DNA from: Gracilinanus agilis
Lineage: Eukaryota
Assembly (NCBI RefSeq): GCF_016433145.1
Contig: NC_058130.1
Location: 710,116,708 to 710,180,707 of the forward strand
DNA length: 64,000 bases
Reading direction: 5' to 3'
The notes beneath the pieces are model-generated. The model worked only from the letters and a program-made list of their open reading frames with translations, was not told the origin of the DNA and ran no database searches. A program made the position numbers and the translations under genes. Below are positions 589-55,475 of the stretch, piece by piece; position 1 is the first letter of the stretch; every line of letters begins with the position of its first letter.

Positions 589-14666
<14,078 letters not shown>

Positions 14667-32001: not shown

Positions 32002-34265
32002 GCACCGCTGTCCCTTTCTCTGGGTCCCTCAGAGCCTAAGCATGGACCTCCCTCATCCTGAGTGAAAAAACGCCTAGCCTGGATGCTACAAGACTATACC
32101 TCAAGCACCCCAGGGGAAAAGGCTCTCCAAAAACAAAACAAAAAAAAAACAGAATTTAAAAAATAAAATTAACAAAATAAAATTTAAAAAAACATTTGTA
32201 AACGGCTCCCAGAGACCTGCTCGAGTTTTTACGCGATTTTATAAAATTAAATTAAAAATCTGAGCTGAGGAATGTGCGTGACACCACGCTTGAAATGGTG
32301 AATGAGGGATGGAAGAGAAATGGAAGGGAATGACAGGCTCTGACTCAAAAGATACAGGATTCCCCATCCTGAGATGGAAGGCAGGCATAAGTCCCAGGGC
32401 ATCACCTAAGAAAAGGGAGATCTTGGCCCCTAGAGAAGGGCTGACAAAAGACACCAAAATCCAAGAACAGAGGAGACAAGAGGGAGCAGAAAGCCACTGG
32501 AATGTTTCCCAGTTGAGTTTGCTTCCATCAAAGCCCATTTGTGACACCTCTCCAGGGGCTACAGCACTGATCCCTCCTCATTGTAATCCCTTAGTCTTTT
32601 GCCCACATCTGGGGTCCACCAGGATACTGACAGTTCCCAGGCCCAGAAAAAAACCCCACCAGACCTCATTTCCTTAGGTTCGGGTTGGGCAGCATTTATA
32701 GAGGTCCCTATCCTAGTTTCCACAAAGCAATGTCTGCCTCAAATAACCACTTCTCACTCACTTCTCCCCTCTGGGCTCTTATTAAGGACTGAGGGAATGA
32801 ATAAGTAGAAATTCTATGGGTCATCTATTTCACTTTTCCCCTCTCACTCTGATTCACAAGGGCTCTGACTTCCCACTGCCACCACTTGGCTGACAATTCC
32901 CAGCAAGTAAACCACCCAGAAGAAAGCTTTTCTTGGCTATGGTCAAAGCTGGTTCCAGCCATTGTCCCAATACCAAAAATGTTAAATAAAATGAGACAAG
33001 AAAAGGATGGCCCTGAGGCCTGAACAGGACAGAAAAGGAAACAGGAAGGAACCCCTAAGACTGTCCTATCAACATTTCTAGGAGAGAGAAAGAAGAGATA
33101 CTAAGTTGTATTCATTCAGTTTATGCTCTGATATCTTAGGGCTCATCCACATATGGGGAACCAACAGTGGTAGAGAAGCAAAGTCTTCCTCCCTGTGGGA
33201 AGATTGCTAGGTAGCCTCAAGATGGAGGCTGGGAGACAGTTGACCCAAGTTGAAGGGGCTCACCTTATGCTCCGAACACGCCACATCTCCCAGCTGCTAC
33301 CTGCTTCCCCTTCTGTCCCCCCTCCCCCCACTGGGTTTGAAAGGGAAAGGTGAAGTAAACGCAATAGCAGCAGCAGCACGATACAGGTGTACAACCGGTG
33401 AGAGGAGAATTCGCTGAGCAGTAGCTTTAAAAGCATGCGTCTCTACAGTGCTGACCAGCGTAGCGGGGCCCAGGGCCCAGGAAATGGCTGCCCTCCTGGA
33501 TGAATCATTGGGCTAGACAGCCCAGAGGAGGACCTGTACCTTCTTTTTCTCCCTCCCCACCCCACGGCCCCAAGGCACTGGGCTCTTGCCAGTTGGGACC
33601 CTCTGTCATGGCATTCTTCAGACCAATGCACAGCACCTATTACAGAAGCATCTTAAACTCTAGATGAAGGTTACATTTAAGTCATTATGGCCTAACTCAC
33701 AGGATTCGCTACTCTAAATGTCACCATGCAGTCAGGGAAAAAGGTGGGAGAACCAGGCAAAGCCCCACTCCCACCAATCTGGATGCACCATAATCCCCAC
33801 AGCGACACCCCCCACCCCGCCAGACTGATGGGCAGTACCAGAATAGTGGCTGCTTGTTCTATTTTTCCTTTCGTTTTTAAACGTTTTTTAACCCTACTCC
33901 GTGCGCACGAGAGAGACCACCTGTGTCAGTGTCTCTCGGATCACTAGAACAATTCCCTTTCCCCGTTTGTTTCCCCTTCTTCCTCCTCTTCCTCCTCCAA
34001 AACAAGATCCTGTTGCAGCGAGTCCTCCCCCCACCCACCGCCCCCCGTGTGGCTGGCACTGCTCAGGCTTCTGCCAGAGATGAAAGCCCCTGGTTTGTAG
34101 AATGAGCGTGGAGGCCCCCCACCCCCCACCCCCGCAATGGCAGGAAGACGGGAAGTCGTTTAGTTTTGTGTCCCACGTACTCCTCCCTAACCCCCCACTG
34201 ACAGGGCACTGCAACACCTGGATGCTGATGAGCTCCCAGCAACCCCTCCCAACGCCGTCAGGAAC
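31630..34265 (-). other. TNPO2: TNPO2 terminal non-coding (3' UTR) exon
   Basis: Donor AG|GTAAGA at 34418, 25 nt after the stop; acceptor ctctctttgcccccag at 34266. Long U-rich UTR; variant signal ACTAAA at 31650-31655 followed by a GU/U-rich tract. Confidence 0.6.
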
Positions 34266-34443
34266 CTGGGGGCAAAGAGAGAGGAGGAAGGAGTGTCAGC
34301 AACAGGGCCCAGTCCCCAGTGTCCAGAGCCCCAGGCTGCTCCCAATAGCAGCTTCACCTCTCTTCCACCCTTCTCCAGAATGGGCCTCACAGGCTACTCC
34401 TGGAGGCCTGGGTCTTACCTAGTGCGTGGTCTCCCAGCTTCAC

Positions 34444-43925
<9,482 letters not shown>

Positions 43926-44466
43926 TTAGAACCTCCCGGGTAGGTCCTGGTCACATAAGTGGACACCAGTGCTGGCCCTCACAGGGGAGGGCGGAGATGA
44001 GGAGGCAGAAAAGTCCCTGGGGCCACGTGGGGAGGCCAGGGGAAGGGGGGGGAGGGGCGCAGCAGCAACTACAACAAGAGCCAGAGCTGATCACTCCCCC
44101 ACACCCCGCTCTCTGCTAGAGGTCCCCGAAGCGCTGGCCCCAGGGAGAAAGGAAGAGGGCCTCGGTCCCTCCTGGGCTGAGCCGGGGGAAAGACGAGAAG
44201 GGGGGGGGGGGAGGTGCCAAGAGGAGGGTGCACGCTGGCCTGAGGCCTCAGCCCTCCGCACCCCCATCCATCTGGGCCGCCGCCGTCGCGCCGAACCACC
44301 TCCTCGCTGCTTGCCCCGCTCTCCCCAGCTCCGGGCCCGGGCCCACTAACAGGCCAGGCCGCTCCCCGAGGCCCAGCTTCGGCCCCGGAGCGCCTGCTCC
44401 CTCACAACAGGCCACAGCTGGCAGCCGGCTGGACCGGGGGCCGTAGGCTCAGGCCGAACCACTCAC

Positions 44467-44680
44467 CGGGACCCGACGATGACCAGGGCAGCGGAGACTA
44501 CGGCGGCGGCGGCGGCGGCGACGGCGGCGGCGACTCCTCGCTCTGCGGCTTCTCCCGAGACACACACGGGGAGGAGCGAGGAAGCGAATAAAAAATAAAA
44601 AAAAAAAAAAAAAAAAGGGAACGCGACTTGGCCTGAGCCGCAGCGGCTTCCGTCCACCGTTCAAACTGTCTCCCTTTAGC
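44467..44680 (-). other. TNPO2: TNPO2 non-coding first exon
   Basis: GC-rich with a (GCC)n tract, donor CCG|GTGAGT at 44466; acceptor ccttttag at 43892 sits 14 nt before the Kozak ACCATGG. Confidence 0.6.
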
Positions 44681-44845
44681 CAATCAAAACTCTGGGCGGG
44701 CCCAGGGACACGAGAGGAGGGAGGAAGGCGAAAGGCGCCGGGCGGTGGTGGGAAAGGAAGAAGAGGCGGAGCATATTCTCGAGGGTGTCACGTGATCAGC
44801 GACTGAAGCGGAACCAGAAGAGGGACTCTGTCACGTGATGAGGGA
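44680..44845 (-). promoter_or_regulatory. TNPO2 promoter
   Basis: CCAAT at about 44681, GC box GGGCGGG at about 44695, two GTCACGTGAT E-boxes at 44787-44796 and 44830-44839. Confidence 0.6.
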
Positions 44846-46115
44846 GACACCACCCCCCACCCCCCACTTCTTGGGTCTCTCTAGCCTTTCAGTCCTCCAG
44901 TCTCTCTACCTTTCCATCCCTGCACATATACTGGAGTGAGTGATCCCGGTGTTCTATGTGTCGAAGAGTCATGTATCCTCATCTTCAAGATCCAGAAGCC
45001 TCGTTTCTTATCCAGGGCCACCCTCTTTTCCCCTGCTACATTTCCTCTCACCCTTCCTGAGGTCCAGCTCTACCACTATGGGCTGTATAACTTTGAACAA
45101 ATTAACATGTCTGGGTCTCAGATTCATCATGTGAAAAATGAGAGGGCGATCACCTGTAAAGATTCTCTTCCAGCTCTGTCTATTATTAACCTATAAATGC
45201 AATTAATTGTTTCAGGAGCACTTTGGATATATATTACCTCCTGTTCCAGACTAGCCTTCCAAATTCCCTGATTTGACTTGTTTCCTTCTCCATAAAATGA
45301 AGTGATTGAAGAAGATCCCTTTTAGCTCACTGTTTCCATGATTCCAGGGTTCATACATACTAATAATCTTCCATTCCTGCCCCTTACCCTCCCCAGGTTT
45401 CCTTGTTTCTTGACTTTTTTCCTCTTATACCATTCTTCCTCAGACTTTCTGCTGCCAGCTTCCTAAAGCCCAAGGCCAAGCAGGTATGTAAGAAGGTAGT
45501 TGTCATTTTGTTTGGTCTGTGAGTTCTGAATCATCACCTCCAGGGCAGAGATTTGAAGAACTTAATTTATTGTTTTGTTTTGTTTTTTCAGTAGCTTCCA
45601 TCCATCAAATATCTTAATCATCCCAATGTTTAGGAAAATAGGAGAGAATGGGAGGTAAAATGGAGACAACTAACACAAAGGCCTGAGGGAGAATGAGCTG
45701 GCCATTGTAACAATTGAAAAGGCCAGCCAGAGTGGAGGAGAGTAGATTAGGGCATACTGGGACTGTCGACATCTATAATGGGGAAATCCTGGCTCTAAGG
45801 ATCTTGGATTTAGGCTCCTGGGCAAGGAAAAGGATGTGTGTGTAATTGTAGAGATTAATTAAAAGGAGAAGCAATTCTCTTTTCATAAAGAGACCTCTGC
45901 TGGAATTTCCATTATTAGGGGCATAAGAAAGAACCAATGAACAGTATGAATTAGGATTGTGACCATCACCCTATTGTTTAAAGAGAGTAGAGAGTAAAGA
46001 GCAATTTGAGGTGGAAGGACCTGAAATTTGATCTTTAGCTTGGTGTGTAATTTTAGATAAACATCTTCTCCGTTGCTTCAGTTTCCTACTCTCTAAAATA
46101 AAAGGGGTGGAGGTG

Positions 46116-46500: not shown

Positions 46501-46939
46501 TATATATAAAATAAAGTAGGGTCTAAATCATGATTCTATGAACTCCCTGGGGTTCCGTAGTCTTTGCAGCCTAGGCCCAAGGGAGGTTTTGCACTTCCTA
46601 GAACCTTCCTGAGTTCCCAGAAGGATCCTGAAAGACAACTTAGGGTTGAACAAACGATCAAGGCCCCAGCTTGCTATAATGAAAGGGCTGCCAAGATAAG
46701 AATGAGGAAGAATAGAAAGGTTTCTTTCTCTCTTTTATCCTACTCTGGGCTCAAGGGCTTTGCCTTCATTCTTTCCACAAATATTTTTCAAAACTAGGAC
46801 ACCTGCCATGAAAAATTACAATAGAAGGCTGGATTCTGTCCAAACAGCTAACAGCCGCTTACCGCCATCCCCTCATCACTTTAGATGTCACTATAGGTGC
46901 CCCAGGTCTACAGAGCTTTAGGGTCTCAACCGAGGCCAA

Positions 46940-47290
46940 AAGCAAAAACACGTGGTTCCCGCCCCCCTCCCGCTGCCCGCATGGAAGCGAGAGGAAGCAG
47001 CTCGCTTTCGCGTGCACATGCGCATGTGAAGCCCTGCTCCTTGCTCAGTTTCATGCCCCTCCCCCGAGCGCACCCGTAACTACAACTCCCACGATGCTCT
47101 GCGCCTCGAGCTGGGGCACTTCCGGCCAGGGCTGTAAACAGCAGTGAGTCCTAGCTGGGCCGGGAGCCCCGGCGGTGGAGGGAGGATGGCGGGGCCCGGT
47201 CTGCCTGGGGTCCCCGGAGCTGGAACGAACGCCGGGGCCTGGGTACCCGGAAGGAGGGGCCTCGGCCGCCGCTGAGCGGGCCGGGCCGGG
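46940..47290 (+). promoter_or_regulatory. CpG-island promoter/5' UTR of the RNF11-like gene
   Basis: E-box CACGTG 46949-46954; NRF1-like palindrome CACATGCGCATGTG at about 47015; ZNF143/THAP11 composite ACTACAACTCCCACGATGC 47079-47097; ETS CACTTCCGG 47117-47125. Confidence 0.7.
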
Positions 47291-47291
47291 C

Positions 47292-49529
47292 ATGGGGAAC
47301 TGCCTGTCGTCGCAGCGATCCGGGACCGGGGCTGGAGACGAGGCGGGGGCCGGAGCCGCCGACGATCTGTCTCTGCTCAACGACTCCGGGGACGGGAACA
47401 GCCTCCCCGGGGACCTGCCGCCGCCCCCGCCGCCCCCGCCGCCCTACAGGGTGAGAACCGCGCCGGACAGACCGGGCTGGGAGCTGAGGAACGGGGCATC
47501 CACCACCCACTCCGCCCCACAGGAGCAGGGCTGGGCACAGGGAGAGACCCTAGGCATATGCCGCCATCCGCGCACCCCAGAAGGGCAGAGCAGGGCTCGA
47601 CTCGGGACAGGAAAACCCCTAGTGTCTTCGACCACCCCTAGAGAGGCAAGGCTAAGTCTTGAATAGGGTAACTCTGCCATTATTCAACTCATTGCCCCAG
47701 GGCAGAGCAGAACTGGGAACGGGGACCTTGAGAATCTACCTGAAACCACCCAGCTTCCTAGAGAGAGAAGGCAAGATTAGGCAGATAGGACTTAAGTCAT
47801 CTCACTTATCACCTCCAGAGAGGAAGGGCTGGGCTGGGCACAGGGAAATCCCTGGGCATCCCCACCACCCATGGCCTCCAGAGGGTCAGGAGGAACTGGG
47901 GACAGGAAGATCTCAGCGTTCCACTTCAACAACTCTGAAAGTCAGGCTGTGCAGAAGACAGGAAACTTTTGGAATCTACTCTTTTCACCTTAAGGAGTGG
48001 ACAGGAGTAAAGCAGAAGGATTAGGGAATGGGGGATCCTGGAATTTGCCAAGCTGGGGACAGAAGGACTGACTAGAAGTCCCAAAAGAAATGCAGAGGCC
48101 TTCCTACTGAATAAAATCATTAGACAATGGAAATAGCACAGGATTCAGGAAGGAGACCTCTTTGAATTCTAGCTCAGGCAGTTACTACCCTGTGAACTTG
48201 GGCAAATCCTGTCCCTTCTGTTTCCTTCTTTGGAAGATAAAGCGGTTGGATTAAATGATCTCTCAGGCCTCTCCAGCTCTAGATCTTATGATCATACACA
48301 GAGATAGGGGAACTTATTTAAATCAAGCAAGTCAATATTGAATTGAGATAGTGATATTGGACAGGGAGGGATATGGGCTCAGTTCCATTCAGGTGGAGCA
48401 CTTGATTTTGTAAGTAGGAGGATTCTCAGGGAACTGTAGTATTGACCCTATTAAGGCAGGCCTAGAACTAGACTACTTGAGGAGACCAATGGGAGCTAGA
48501 CCCAGGCAGGTTGAAAGATGAGTTTCCCAGAGACAAGTTGCCATGTATATCCTGTCCCCATTCCCCCCCTCCCCCCAGGGACGGGAGCCAATCCCAGTGT
48601 ACCACCCATCTCCGGGCCAGAGTCGACTGGCCACACAGCTCACAGAGGAGGAGCAGATCCGCATCGCCCAGAGAATTGGCCTGATCCAGCACCTGCCCAA
48701 GGGTATCTTCGACCCTGGCTCTGAGGGGTCCGAAAAGAAAATGAAAGAGTAAGGGTGGGGAATAAGATGAGGATGCCCCAGGCTCCAGAAGGGAATGTTG
48801 CTGTATATCTGCAGGCTAGTCCTCCTGGAAGCAGGGATCTGTGACCCTTCAGTAGCTGAAGCTGCCTTTTTTGTCTTTTTAAAAAGTAGATCTGGGAAAA
48901 TACCCAGGCCTCTGCGACATACCTGTTGTGTCTCTGACAGGATCCTTAAGTTTGGCACCAGTTGCTCCATTTTGGGGGCTCACTGTCCACTCCTTGCCCC
49001 ACCCACCCAAACCTGCCAGCTCCAGAAGGACAAGGTTTTGGGTCTCTCCCAAGCCATGAACTCAAGGGCAGGGCCATGGTCTTCTACTTTTCTGTTTTCT
49101 CCAGACAGATCCCCAAGAGCAAGTCCAAGGTCTGCCATTCCTTGTCTCTCCCAGCTGACATCCTTGAAGGCAGGCCCTAGTATCTCCTCAATCAACAATG
49201 TAGTTCAAGGCTGGGTGCACAAGGGGAAGCCTCTGTGGCAATTAGAGATGAGATACTGGGCTGGAGTGGCCTGGGAATGGAGGGGACAGGGTCGGGAGGG
49301 TGGAGAAAAGGGCGAGAACTGGCAATACATATTCTCATCCATCCCTGGTCCCTGCAGGTGTGTGATCTGCATGTTGGACTTTGTGTATGGGGATGCCATA
49401 CGCTTCTTGCCATGCCTGCACACCTACCACGTCCACTGCATTGATGACTGGCTCATGCGCTCTCTCACATGTCCCTCTTGCATGGAGCCAGTGGACGCAG
49501 CCCTGCTTTCCTCCTATGAGACAAGCTGA
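47292..49529 (+). CDS. RNF11-like RING-H2 protein (RNF11 paralogue), 3 exons, 166 aa
   Basis: Exons 47292-47450 (159 nt), 48579-48748 (170 nt), 49358-49529 (172 nt), all GT-AG. MGNCLSSQRSGTGAGDEAGAGAADDLSLLNDSGDGNSLPGDLPPPPPPPPPYR|GREPIPVYHPSPGQSRLATQLTEEEQIRIAQRIGLIQHLPKGIFDPGSEGSEKKMKE|CVICMLDFVYGDAIRFLPCLHTYHVHCIDDWLMRSLTCPSCMEPVDAALLSSYETS*. RNF11-family hallmarks: MGNC, DDxSLL, PPxY, RING-H2 C3H2C3. Confidence 0.93.
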
Positions 49530-50689
49530 ATTTGGAACCTGGCAGCCAACATGTCCCCTGGGCCTACTCAGGTGAGCCCTGGGGAAAAGCAGCAGCAATA
49601 GCTGCTGGAGCTAGAAATTTTTTACATTTGGGGAACTGAATACTGAAACTAGGCAGGTCCCCATCCAAGAGGTTGCTGTTCTATGGATGTCCTGGCCTCA
49701 GATACATCATGCTAACTTTTCAGTGTCCCTAGCTCAAGTTTGATGCTTTTCAAGTAAAGTTACTCCAGTTTCCTCTCCCCCCAAAACCCATCTCTAGACT
49801 ATTTTTACCACTGTTTTTAAAGATGATCCTGAAAACTAATCTTTTTCAACCCTATTGCTGAACCCCAGAGCCTAGTACCTGAATCTTCTTTTAGGGGTGC
49901 TATATTTCAAATCCTAAAGTCAAACATCCACTGTGGCTAAAGTCCAGTGAGGACTGGAGTGGTGAGGGTGCAGGAAGAACAGATTATACGTTGGTCCCCT
50001 CTGTGTGGGCCTTTGCTGGTGGGAATTGAAAGCCAGGCCACTTTTGCAAACAAGCCTGATGTTTTGCTATCTCCCTTTTATCTTCTGGAAGTAGAAGGAA
50101 ACTTGTCTCCCTTCTTGTACCTGTGACCTACCCCAAGCCAATTTGAGTCAGAATTCCAACCCTTCCCCTCAGTTGGGCCAACTTTGATCAGTCACAATAC
50201 CTATTCTGTTCTTTCATAATCTTGGGAGTTGGACAAATGGGATTGGGGTAGTCATCTCTTCTACCCCTATTCCTTGGACAAGTTGAGTCTTGCTTACCTT
50301 AAGGCCTTGGTTTAGAGCTGAGGACAATGGATCATGCATGACCTGCTTTGGGGAGGTTCTTAGGTTTGGGTTGTGTTTTTTTTGTTTGTTTTTTTAAGCC
50401 AAACTGTGGATCGGGGATGCAGAGAGGGAAGCAGCATGGCATGGTTTCACACATATGGCTCACCTGAGGAAGTACTGCCTTCAACATAGCCGAGACCCCA
50501 CCCCCACCCATCCTAGGGCACAGGCCTCCTTTCTGCTGGCAGGGGCTTTTGCTCCTGGTCATTGTGGTGTCCCCAGGCCACCCCCACTCTAGAGGGAGGG
50601 TGACTAGAGAGGAACCTTATAAATGATTATCTCTGGGCTAGTTCCAGTAGAAGAAATGAACAGGGCCCCTGATCATGTGGAAGACAAGC

Positions 50690-50695
50690 AATAAA
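50690..50695 (+). terminator. AATAAA poly(A) signal for the RNF11-like gene
   Basis: First AATAAA after the stop (about 1.16 kb), followed by TGTGTTG; a second AATAAA lies at 50818-50823. Confidence 0.6.
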
Positions 50696-51056
50696 ATGTG
50701 TTGCACATAAAATGGACCCCATGTACTGTTTGAATGAGAATCAGAGCTGGAGAAAACCAAGGGCATTCAGTCCTATAGACCCAAAGAAACAAGGTTAAAA
50801 TTCAAGTCATACAATTAAATAAAAGACCTATAAGCTTGTTAAAGCCAACAGAACAGAACTTCAGGCCTCAGGATCCCTGGGAGAGAGAACCCAAGTCCTT
50901 GTGGATTCTTCAGAAGAGCTGGTATTACTTGTCACAAGCATACAGGTCCTAGAGAAACCTGATCAGAATACAGCTTGGCTCAGCTCTTCAGACAGTGGGT
51001 AGAATTGCTCTCACCACTTCTGAACAAGTGTAGAGCCCTATTTTTCTGTACAGAGT

Positions 51057-54992: not shown

Positions 54993-55034
<42 letters not shown>

Positions 55035-55475
55035 CGCGGCGCGGCCCGTCCCGCCCTCCCGCGGGCGGCGGCTCCTTACGAAGCTGAGCGCCGCCGGGCC
55101 GGGCCCGCTCCTCTTCTTCGGCTCGCCGCCGCCGGCGGGAGTCGGGGCGGCGGCGGCCCCCGGGGGCGGCGGCGGCTCATCTGGACTCTGCTGCTGCTGC
55201 CGCTGCCGCCGCCGCTCCTCCTCCTCCTCCATCTTCCGCTTGAACAGCTCCAGGAAGCTGCCGTCGTTGGCGAACAGGTTCACGCCCCCCGAGGCCGGGC
55301 CCGACGCCGCTGTCGCGTCCTCCTCCTCCTCCCCGGCTCCCGAGCCCGCCCCGGACTCGGCCCCAGCGCCGCCTGGCCCGGGCCACCGGCTCCCGCCTCC
55401 CCCGCCAGCGCCGCCGCCCGCGGGGCCCGACGGCTCCCGGCCCGCAGGCTCCGCCCGTCTCCCTCGGGCCGCCAT
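53707..55475 (-). CDS. TRIR: Telomerase RNA component interacting RNase (C19orf43), 3 exons, 193 aa
   Basis: Exons 55080-55475, 54093-54170, 53707-53814 (582 nt). MAARGRRAEP...VNLFANDGSFLELFKRKMEEE...ALSF|VGKRRGGNKLALKTGIVAKKQKTEDE|VMTSKGDAWAKYMAEVKKYKAHQCSDDDKTRPLVK*. The ATG lies in a YY1-type CAAAATGGCGGC. Confidence 0.97.
54995..55032. repeat. (CT)n microsatellite in TRIR intron 1
   Basis: About 18 CT units. Confidence 0.9.

Follow-up and report, generated by a model that had tools for sequence, protein, structure and literature searches.

The stretch of Gracilinanus agilis DNA analyzed here (64,000 nucleotides of contig NC_058130.1, positions 710,116,708 to 710,180,707 of the forward strand; hereafter, the window) contains a small intron-bearing gene, RNF11-like, which is very probably an ancient paralogue of RNF11. 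It would be the orthologue of the gene called rnf11a in fishes, located beside TNPO2 and TRIR in tetrapods and lost on the stem of the placental mammals. The gene lies on the plus strand, and its three coding exons of 159, 170, and 172 nt (Table 1) join into 501 nt, that is, 166 codons followed by TGA. Both introns have a GT donor, a polypyrimidine tract, and an AG acceptor, and there are no runs of N in the window. A preliminary description, made from the DNA letters, had given this 166-amino-acid open reading frame, and its coordinates and content proved exact. The protein is identical over all 166 residues to RefSeq XP_044514359.1 (P0323; "RING finger protein 11-like [Gracilinanus agilis]"), so both correspond to the same three-exon model. 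This identity and the conservation of the exons in koala (see below) put the gene well outside what chance could produce.

All the features of the RNF11 family that we looked for are present in the protein (MGNC, the di-leucine, PPxY, RING-H2, RSxTCP, and exons 2 and 3 of 170 and 172 nt). The MGNC motif occupies residues 1 to 4, with M1, G2, and C4 invariant in an alignment of 19 sequences; DDLSLL, at residues 24 to 29, is the counterpart of the DDISLL acidic di-leucine of RNF11; and the run of nine prolines at residues 43 to 51 includes the beginning of PPPY (residues 49 to 52). The RING-H2 domain (C3H2C3; residues 111 to 151) has the spacing C-x2-C-x14-C-x-H-x2-H-x2-C-x10-C-x2-C and matches Pfam zf-RING_2 (PF13639; E value of 5e-13, residues 110 to 151). 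All eight of its ligands are present here and invariant in the same alignment, and the RING is invariant across all marsupials aligned. RSLTCP occupies residues 144 to 149, and its R144, S145, T147, C148, and P149 do not vary among the 19 sequences. Each of the motifs for which the gene had been singled out, from MGNC, DDLSLL, and PPPY to the complete RING-H2, could thus be located. Residues 101 to 156 match the RING domains of RLIM, RNF38, and Arkadia/RNF111 in the PDB (E values of 1e-12 to 1e-14), with no RNF11 chain among the sequence matches. The likeness to these proteins is confined to the RING, and it supports an ordinary fold capable of binding ubiquitin-conjugating enzymes (E2s).

The evidence that carries the paralogy comes from the gene tree, the intron positions, and the synteny, which concur in showing an ancient intron-bearing duplicate, as had been proposed. 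In a maximum likelihood tree with invertebrate outgroups, the window protein falls inside a clade of RNF11-like and rnf11a sequences (27 rows; support of 99/96), apart from canonical RNF11 and its teleost and shark form, rnf11b. A second tree with other sampling gave the same clade a support of 87/96 and recovered it in 98% of the bootstrap trees. The order inside the clade tracks the species tree, from sharks through teleosts and frogs to amniotes, with monotremes and marsupials together; the echidna sequence forms a long branch. Both types of gene are held by sharks (Cetorhinus, with rnf11a P0049 and rnf11b P0338, and Carcharodon), the snake Candoia, the emu, and Monodelphis. The presence of both types in sharks as well as in bony vertebrates places the duplication before these two lineages, cartilaginous and bony, split.

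The coexistence of both types bears directly on a simpler explanation, namely that the window gene is the only RNF11 of this genome, an orthologue that has moved to a new site. We give this virtually no credence, as the window protein belongs to the RNF11-like clade and both types are present not only in emu, Candoia, and sharks but also in Monodelphis, whose TRIR exon 1 is 99% identical to that of the window. Monodelphis codes for a canonical-type RNF11 (P0103), with exons 2 and 3 identical to those of bird and turtle RNF11, in addition to its RNF11-like (P0326). The separate RNF11 that the preliminary description expected is therefore seen in that opossum, and the bird copy lies beside a TTC39-type gene, as expected too; for Gracilinanus itself, we infer a second, canonical RNF11 from Monodelphis.

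RNF11-like has coding exons of x/170/172 nt in koala, turtle, frog, and shark. The bird canonical RNF11 locus, with 123/170/172 nt, confirms the sizes that the preliminary description gave for exons 2 and 3 of canonical RNF11. Variants of this pattern are the echidna gene (120/170/184) and pipefish rnf11a (99/173/172). Since the exon sizes and intron positions match those of canonical RNF11, the gene is not a retrocopy. Extra copies derived from RNF11 do exist in placentals (Pteronotus P0080 and Prolemur P0153), and a retrocopy or a recent duplication specific to marsupials could be imagined here as well. This origin has a negligible probability in our opinion, considering the two introns at RNF11 positions, the orthologues at the same site in monotremes, turtle, and frog, and the presence of sharks and teleosts in the clade.

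The window protein shares about 68% full-length identity with canonical RNF11 (154 amino acids; rnf11b in teleosts), which has the same intron positions and the same order of motifs, MGNC, acidic di-leucine, PPxY, a conserved TEEEQIRIAQRIGLIQHL segment, RING-H2, and RSxTCP. The two can be told apart by diagnostic residues, KGIFDP/KK.KEC/CVICML/LPCLH/YHV in RNF11-like versus KGVYDP/KKIREC/CVICMM/LPCMH/YHL in canonical RNF11, which also forms a separate clade and occupies a separate chromosome region. RNF11-like evolves faster than RNF11, which is near-static across the jawed-vertebrate sequences compared. The rnf11a genes of teleosts and sharks (for example, Dunckerocampus P0036 and Heterodontus P0094) belong to the same clade as the window gene, with x/170(173)/172-nt exons and 19p13-type neighbors (an NFI gene and KRI1), and share with it MGNC, DDxSLL, and RING-H2, to which the teleosts add PPPY. 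They differ at the N terminus: exon 1 is short in teleosts (99 nt), while shark rnf11a has a Gly/Ala-rich insert of its own after the di-leucine and has lost a clean PPxY, whereas the 13-residue insert of marsupials precedes the di-leucine.

Gene order in the window is MAN2B1 (GH38), a WD40 gene, a DHPS-like open reading frame (a label read by eye, without a Pfam match), an F-box gene, TNPO2 (-), RNF11-like (+), and TRIR (-), in agreement with the position between TNPO2 and TRIR given previously. Synteny was compared in seven nonplacental species over 10-kb flanks. Koala, turtle, and wallaby have a like arrangement, with a transportin gene (-), RNF11-like (+), and a gene of ~150 to 210 amino acids without a Pfam match (-), which in koala and wallaby fits TRIR; positions 44000 to 45752 of the window align just 5' of the 899-amino-acid IBN_N/HEAT gene in the koala locus (L001). 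A transportin gene also adjoins RNF11-like in echidna, and in Xenopus, RNF11-like is followed by a 243-amino-acid gene and then by the ArsA ATPase GET3. In fishes, rnf11a adjoins KRI1 in the shark Heterodontus and an NFI gene, noted at the family level, in pipefish. The human counterparts of the TNPO2, TRIR, GET3, KRI1, and NFI neighbors are presumably on 19p13. On the other side, bird canonical RNF11 adjoins a TTC39-type gene; human canonical RNF11, at 1p32, has a neighbor of the same kind. The 19p13 and 1p31-32 regions are usually paired as paralogons of the early vertebrate genome duplications (2R).

RNF11-like would have arisen by duplication of a genomic RNF11 before the split between cartilaginous and bony vertebrates. 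As the copies sit in 19p13-type and 1p32-type paralogous regions, this duplication was most likely part of 2R; the neighbor pattern appears to be what a 2R-derived pair would show, an argument drawn from the immediate neighbors in the 10-kb flanks plus the timing. An ancient paralogue would also result if a small-scale (segmental) event had doubled the gene before jawed vertebrates radiated. The canonical group is not resolved as a clade, nor is the position of the hagfish, and neighbors were compared over short flanks, all of which leaves some room for such an event. We consider it unlikely nonetheless, because TNPO2, TRIR, GET3, KRI1, and NFI on one side and the TTC39-type gene on the other fit the regions usually paired under 2R, and a date before the shark/bony-vertebrate split fits 2R as well.

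The absence from placentals was approached through both the genomic site and the proteins. In the three placentals compared, GET3 (-) and TRIR (+) are followed by a gap without a called gene (7.5 kb in pig, 6.3 kb in African elephant, and 7.9 kb in blind mole rat) and then by TNPO2 (+). No relic of exons 2 and 3 was detected by tblastn of six RNF11-type proteins against the DNA between TRIR and TNPO2 of pig and mole rat, which contains no Ns, and nhmmer searches of the same two loci, with nucleotide profiles built from these exons, did not go beyond chance level (best E value of 0.03). As a positive control, the same profiles match the pipefish gene and the bird paralogue at E values of 1e-37 to 1e-48. 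The proline-rich, low-complexity tblastn matches near the TNPO2 CpG island of pig and mole rat were rejected as relics; matches just as large arose by chance at control loci. Upstream of TNPO2, a noncoding block of the window (44522 to 44668) has 76 to 77% identity over ~100 nt with pig DNA at the corresponding position upstream of TNPO2. This block is likely to be a conserved promoter-proximal element of TNPO2, and its alignment indicates that the opossum and pig regions are orthologous.

Among 5.8 billion proteins searched with a profile of amniote RNF11-like, the ones that outscored canonical RNF11 all came from marsupials, reptiles, monotremes, emu, and alligators. No placental protein of the RNF11-like type was found there, as all 20 full-length placental matches carry canonical-type residues and none reaches the RNF11-like score tier. 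Taken with the empty gap in pig, elephant, and mole rat, this agrees with the placental loss suggested in the preliminary description, as does the lack of decayed exons between TNPO2 and TRIR in the two genomes searched at the DNA level. Two placental proteins deserve a separate comment. Pteronotus P0080, despite being named "RNF11-like," has the canonical signature residues together with many substitutions, and the 21st placental entry, Prolemur simus P0153, is a very divergent protein of 146 amino acids with one signature residue, of the canonical type. Both are probably derived copies of RNF11 (perhaps retrocopies) and not orthologues of the window gene.

Outside placentals, the gene is widespread. 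RNF11-like is annotated in 10 marsupials (Gracilinanus, Monodelphis, koala, wombat, Trichosurus, Petaurus, tammar wallaby, Dromiciops, Antechinus, and Sarcophilus), platypus and echidna, three palaeognath birds (emu, kiwi, and ostrich), two alligators, turtles, snakes, lizards, and frogs (146 amino acids), and under the name rnf11a in teleosts and sharks. The marsupial entries (for example, Monodelphis XP_001362925.1 and koala XP_020850742.1) are the same gene under an uninformative automatic label. The earlier view of a gene retained in marsupials was right for marsupials and too narrow overall, as nearly all jawed vertebrates except placentals keep it, and the gene is neither unannotated nor marsupial specific, given its RefSeq entry in the same species and its equivalence to rnf11a of teleosts and sharks. 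Among birds, proteins of this type were seen in the three palaeognaths only, and the neognath entries listed (22 of 22) are all of the canonical type. This neognath absence could be a second loss, or the gene could be hidden in poorly assembled GC-rich microchromosome sequence. The gene itself is already public (RefSeq, UniProt, and the rnf11a names), and its protein is unstudied. A literature search for rnf11a, rnf11b, RNF11-like, and RNF11 ohnologs gave passing mentions in gene lists, with nothing on evolution or function, and a 2020 review of RNF11 mentions no paralogue (PMC7697665).

RNF11-like is under purifying selection, which is strongest on the central region and the RING. Exons 2 and 3 differ from those of koala at 5 of 339 nt, with one nonsynonymous change (nonsynonymous divergence, dN, of 0.004; synonymous divergence, dS, of 0.05; dN/dS of 0.07). 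This ratio is far from 1, the value that would have spoken against function, and remains low in comparisons with turtle (0.04) and echidna (0.09). Exon 1 is less constrained (dN of 0.06, dS of 0.35, and a ratio of ~0.18 versus koala). In 100-nt bins of the koala alignment, the exons stand out as peaks of 0.81 to 0.99 identity (0.97 to 0.99 inside exons 2 and 3) compared with 0.5 to 0.8 for most of the intron sequence. Another observation concerns the synonymous sites of exons 2 and 3 (positions 11313 to 11482 and 12079 to 12250 of koala L001), which have diverged roughly five times less than the introns: their dS of 0.05 rests on four synonymous changes, versus a divergence (K) of 0.26 to 0.28 in the introns and a dS of 0.35 in exon 1 (binomial P of ~2e-5). 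Such a low synonymous divergence could reflect a function at the nucleotide level, layered on the coding sequence.

The N terminus is the most variable region. A 13-residue Gly/Ala insert, RSGTGAGDEAGAG, follows MGNCLSSQ in all marsupials and nowhere else in the alignment. The di-leucine reads DDLSPL in monotremes, and it is also changed in some marsupials, as in the DNQSLL of Trichosurus. The tyrosine of PPxY is kept in both didelphids, wombat, teleost rnf11a, and canonical RNF11, as well as in every sauropsid and frog compared. It is replaced by Cys in koala and Trichosurus, by His in Dromiciops, and by Ser in wallaby, is displaced in Petaurus, and is absent in both monotremes (platypus and echidna), while the RefSeq models of dasyurids (130 amino acids) skip the whole segment from DDLSLL to the PY motif. 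Wombat still has the tyrosine that its sister koala has lost, which requires that several of these losses occurred independently. The PY motif stressed in the preliminary description is therefore intact in this species and not a general property of the mammalian genes; its repeated loss is a new detail. From these sequences, much of the mammalian clade seems able to do without docking to WW domains, in spite of the textbook PY motif present here, and the repeated loss of the tyrosine suggests that it is probably not under the strongest selection in mammals, which acts on the central region and RING.

These losses, the dasyurid models without DDLSLL and PY, the long echidna branch, and the disappearance of the whole gene in placentals might be read as signs that RNF11-like is on its way out in mammals and is dead or nearly so in Gracilinanus. 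We find this very improbable. The open reading frame is intact here with all its motifs, the RING is invariant in all marsupials, and exons 2 and 3 differ from those of koala by one amino acid, with a dN/dS of 0.07 against an intron K of 0.26 to 0.28. A broader scenario can be sketched, although we hold it tentatively and think it somewhat more apt to be wrong than right. Vertebrates would have started with a pair of RNF11-type adaptors, the second of which was dismantled stepwise in mammals. The PY tyrosine would have gone first, independently in monotremes and on four or more occasions in Australian marsupials, with the RING and the central region frozen, and the gene itself would then have been lost on the placental stem. 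What remained would be a PY-independent job, for example, the sequestering of E2s by the RING, maybe absorbed by RNF11 in placentals, plus a possible nucleotide-level function of exons 2 and 3.

As for the function of the protein, RNF11 offers the model. Myristoylation of Gly2 and palmitoylation of Cys4 are needed for the membrane localization of RNF11, its di-leucine motifs are sorting signals, and its PY motif binds the WW domains of ITCH, SMURF, and NEDD4-type ligases (PMC7697665). The RING has validated contacts with UbcH5, UbcH6, and Ubc13, and its tight binding of Ubc13 inhibits the assembly of K63 ubiquitin chains; in addition, Akt phosphorylates Thr135 and so generates a 14-3-3 site (PMC7697665). 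By analogy, RNF11-like most likely works like RNF11. It would be anchored to membranes by N-myristoylation on Gly2 and palmitoylation on Cys4, and DDLSLL would sort it to endosomes and the Golgi through GGA-type adaptors. Its PPPY may dock the WW domains of NEDD4-family HECT ligases (ITCH and SMURF), the RING-H2 may bind E2s such as UBE2N/Ubc13 and UbcH5, and RSLTCP is a putative switch of the Akt/14-3-3 type. The protein could then act as a small lipid-anchored adaptor and modulator of ubiquitination at endosomal membranes, tuning HECT ligases and the availability of E2s, with a possible role in TGF-beta and NF-kB signaling and in endosomal sorting, as the preliminary description had also proposed.

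Several points weigh against the interpretation of RNF11-like as an ancient, functional paralogue lost in placentals. In the tree, canonical RNF11 and rnf11b form an unresolved comb of near-zero branches without a supported sister clade (the approximately unbiased test does not reject a monophyletic canonical group, with a P value of 0.33), and because of this comb, the tree alone cannot date the duplication relative to cyclostomes. The hagfish sequence falls outside both RNF11 groups; all the invertebrate outgroups are long branches, and neither the position of the root nor the placement of the hagfish is trusted. The placental site was covered by gene calls in three species, with TRIR as the anchor, and by DNA in pig and mole rat only, human being left out, and exons more than 100 million years into decay might have gone unnoticed. 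All the functional steps are borrowed from RNF11, the literature search returned no biochemical work on any RNF11-like or rnf11a protein, and the disappearance of the PY tyrosine in many mammals weakens the step of NEDD4-type adaptor for the mammalian clade. The prediction that the gene is expressed draws, finally, on its CpG island, its RefSeq model, and the conservation of its poly(A) region.

Both ends of the gene bear the marks that had been described for it, a CpG-island promoter and an AATAAA, as measured here (Table 1). The sequence immediately 5' of the ATG is 78 to 92% identical to that of koala, and the island points away from that of TNPO2 (~44000 to 45000), at a spacing of ~3 kb. 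At the other end, the bin at 50600 to 50700, around the AATAAA, has 96% identity with koala, compared with ~0.65 to 0.84 across the remaining 3' untranslated region (UTR), and this conserved block is probably the poly(A) region of RNF11-like. A motif resembling the ZNF143 (SBS) promoter site, ACTACAACTCCCACGATGC, lies at 47080 to 47098, 213 nt 5' of the ATG. A search for this pattern ahead of the gene in koala, turtle, frog, echidna, fish, and bird gave no match, and the motif was not used as evidence. In the neighboring TRIR gene, a short (GA)n-type microsatellite (55019 to 55046, minus strand) lies in intron 1 just past the exon 1 donor at 55079 and appears as RERERERE in a run-on open reading frame, a trivial feature.

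Table 1 Features of the RNF11-like gene and its flanking genes (window coordinates)
Feature	Position	Strand	Details
TNPO2	34000-44350 (extent approximate)	-	Head-to-head with RNF11-like; transportin-like open reading frames
CpG-island promoter and 5' UTR of RNF11-like	~46900-47500	+	GC 0.61-0.75, CpG observed/expected 0.71-0.92 (200-nt bins)
Coding exon 1	47292-47450	+	159 nt, residues 1-53; ATG; donor CAGG/GTGAGA (slash, exon boundary)
Exon 1 motifs	MGNC 47292-47303; DDLSLL 47361-47378; PPPY 47436-47447	+	Also 13-residue Gly/Ala insert and nine-proline run
Intron 1	47451-48578	+	GT...AG, phase 0; K = 0.26 versus koala
Coding exon 2	48579-48748	+	170 nt; central region PVYHP...TEEEQIRIAQRIGLIQHLPKG; acceptor after polypyrimidine run and CAG; donor AAGA/GTAAGG
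Intron 2	48749-49357	+	GT...AG; K = 0.28 versus koala
Coding exon 3	49358-49529	+	172 nt including TGA stop; acceptor CTGCAG/G
Exon 3 motifs	RING-H2 49359-49481; RSLTCP (putative Akt/14-3-3-type site) 49458-49475	+	Motif search of the protein
Probable 3' UTR	49530-50710	+	First AATAAA past the stop at 50690-50695; end predicted from it
TRIR exon 1	55080-55475	-	Tail-to-tail with RNF11-like; 99% identity to Monodelphis TRIR, 96% to Trichosurus TRIR

As a genomic finding, this is a modest one, as many early-vertebrate duplicates, RNF11-like among them, have been lost in a single lineage. Its interest lies in the fact that the work on RNF11 (the NF-kB/A20 complex, TGF-beta/SMURF2, and the sorting of the epidermal growth factor receptor) has been done almost wholly in placental systems. 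Placentals, apparently without RNF11-like, amount to a natural experiment. Most other vertebrates, among them zebrafish, Xenopus, chicken relatives, and opossum, may possess a closely similar second gene, so that possible redundancy would matter for the interpretation of knockouts and morpholinos in these animals.

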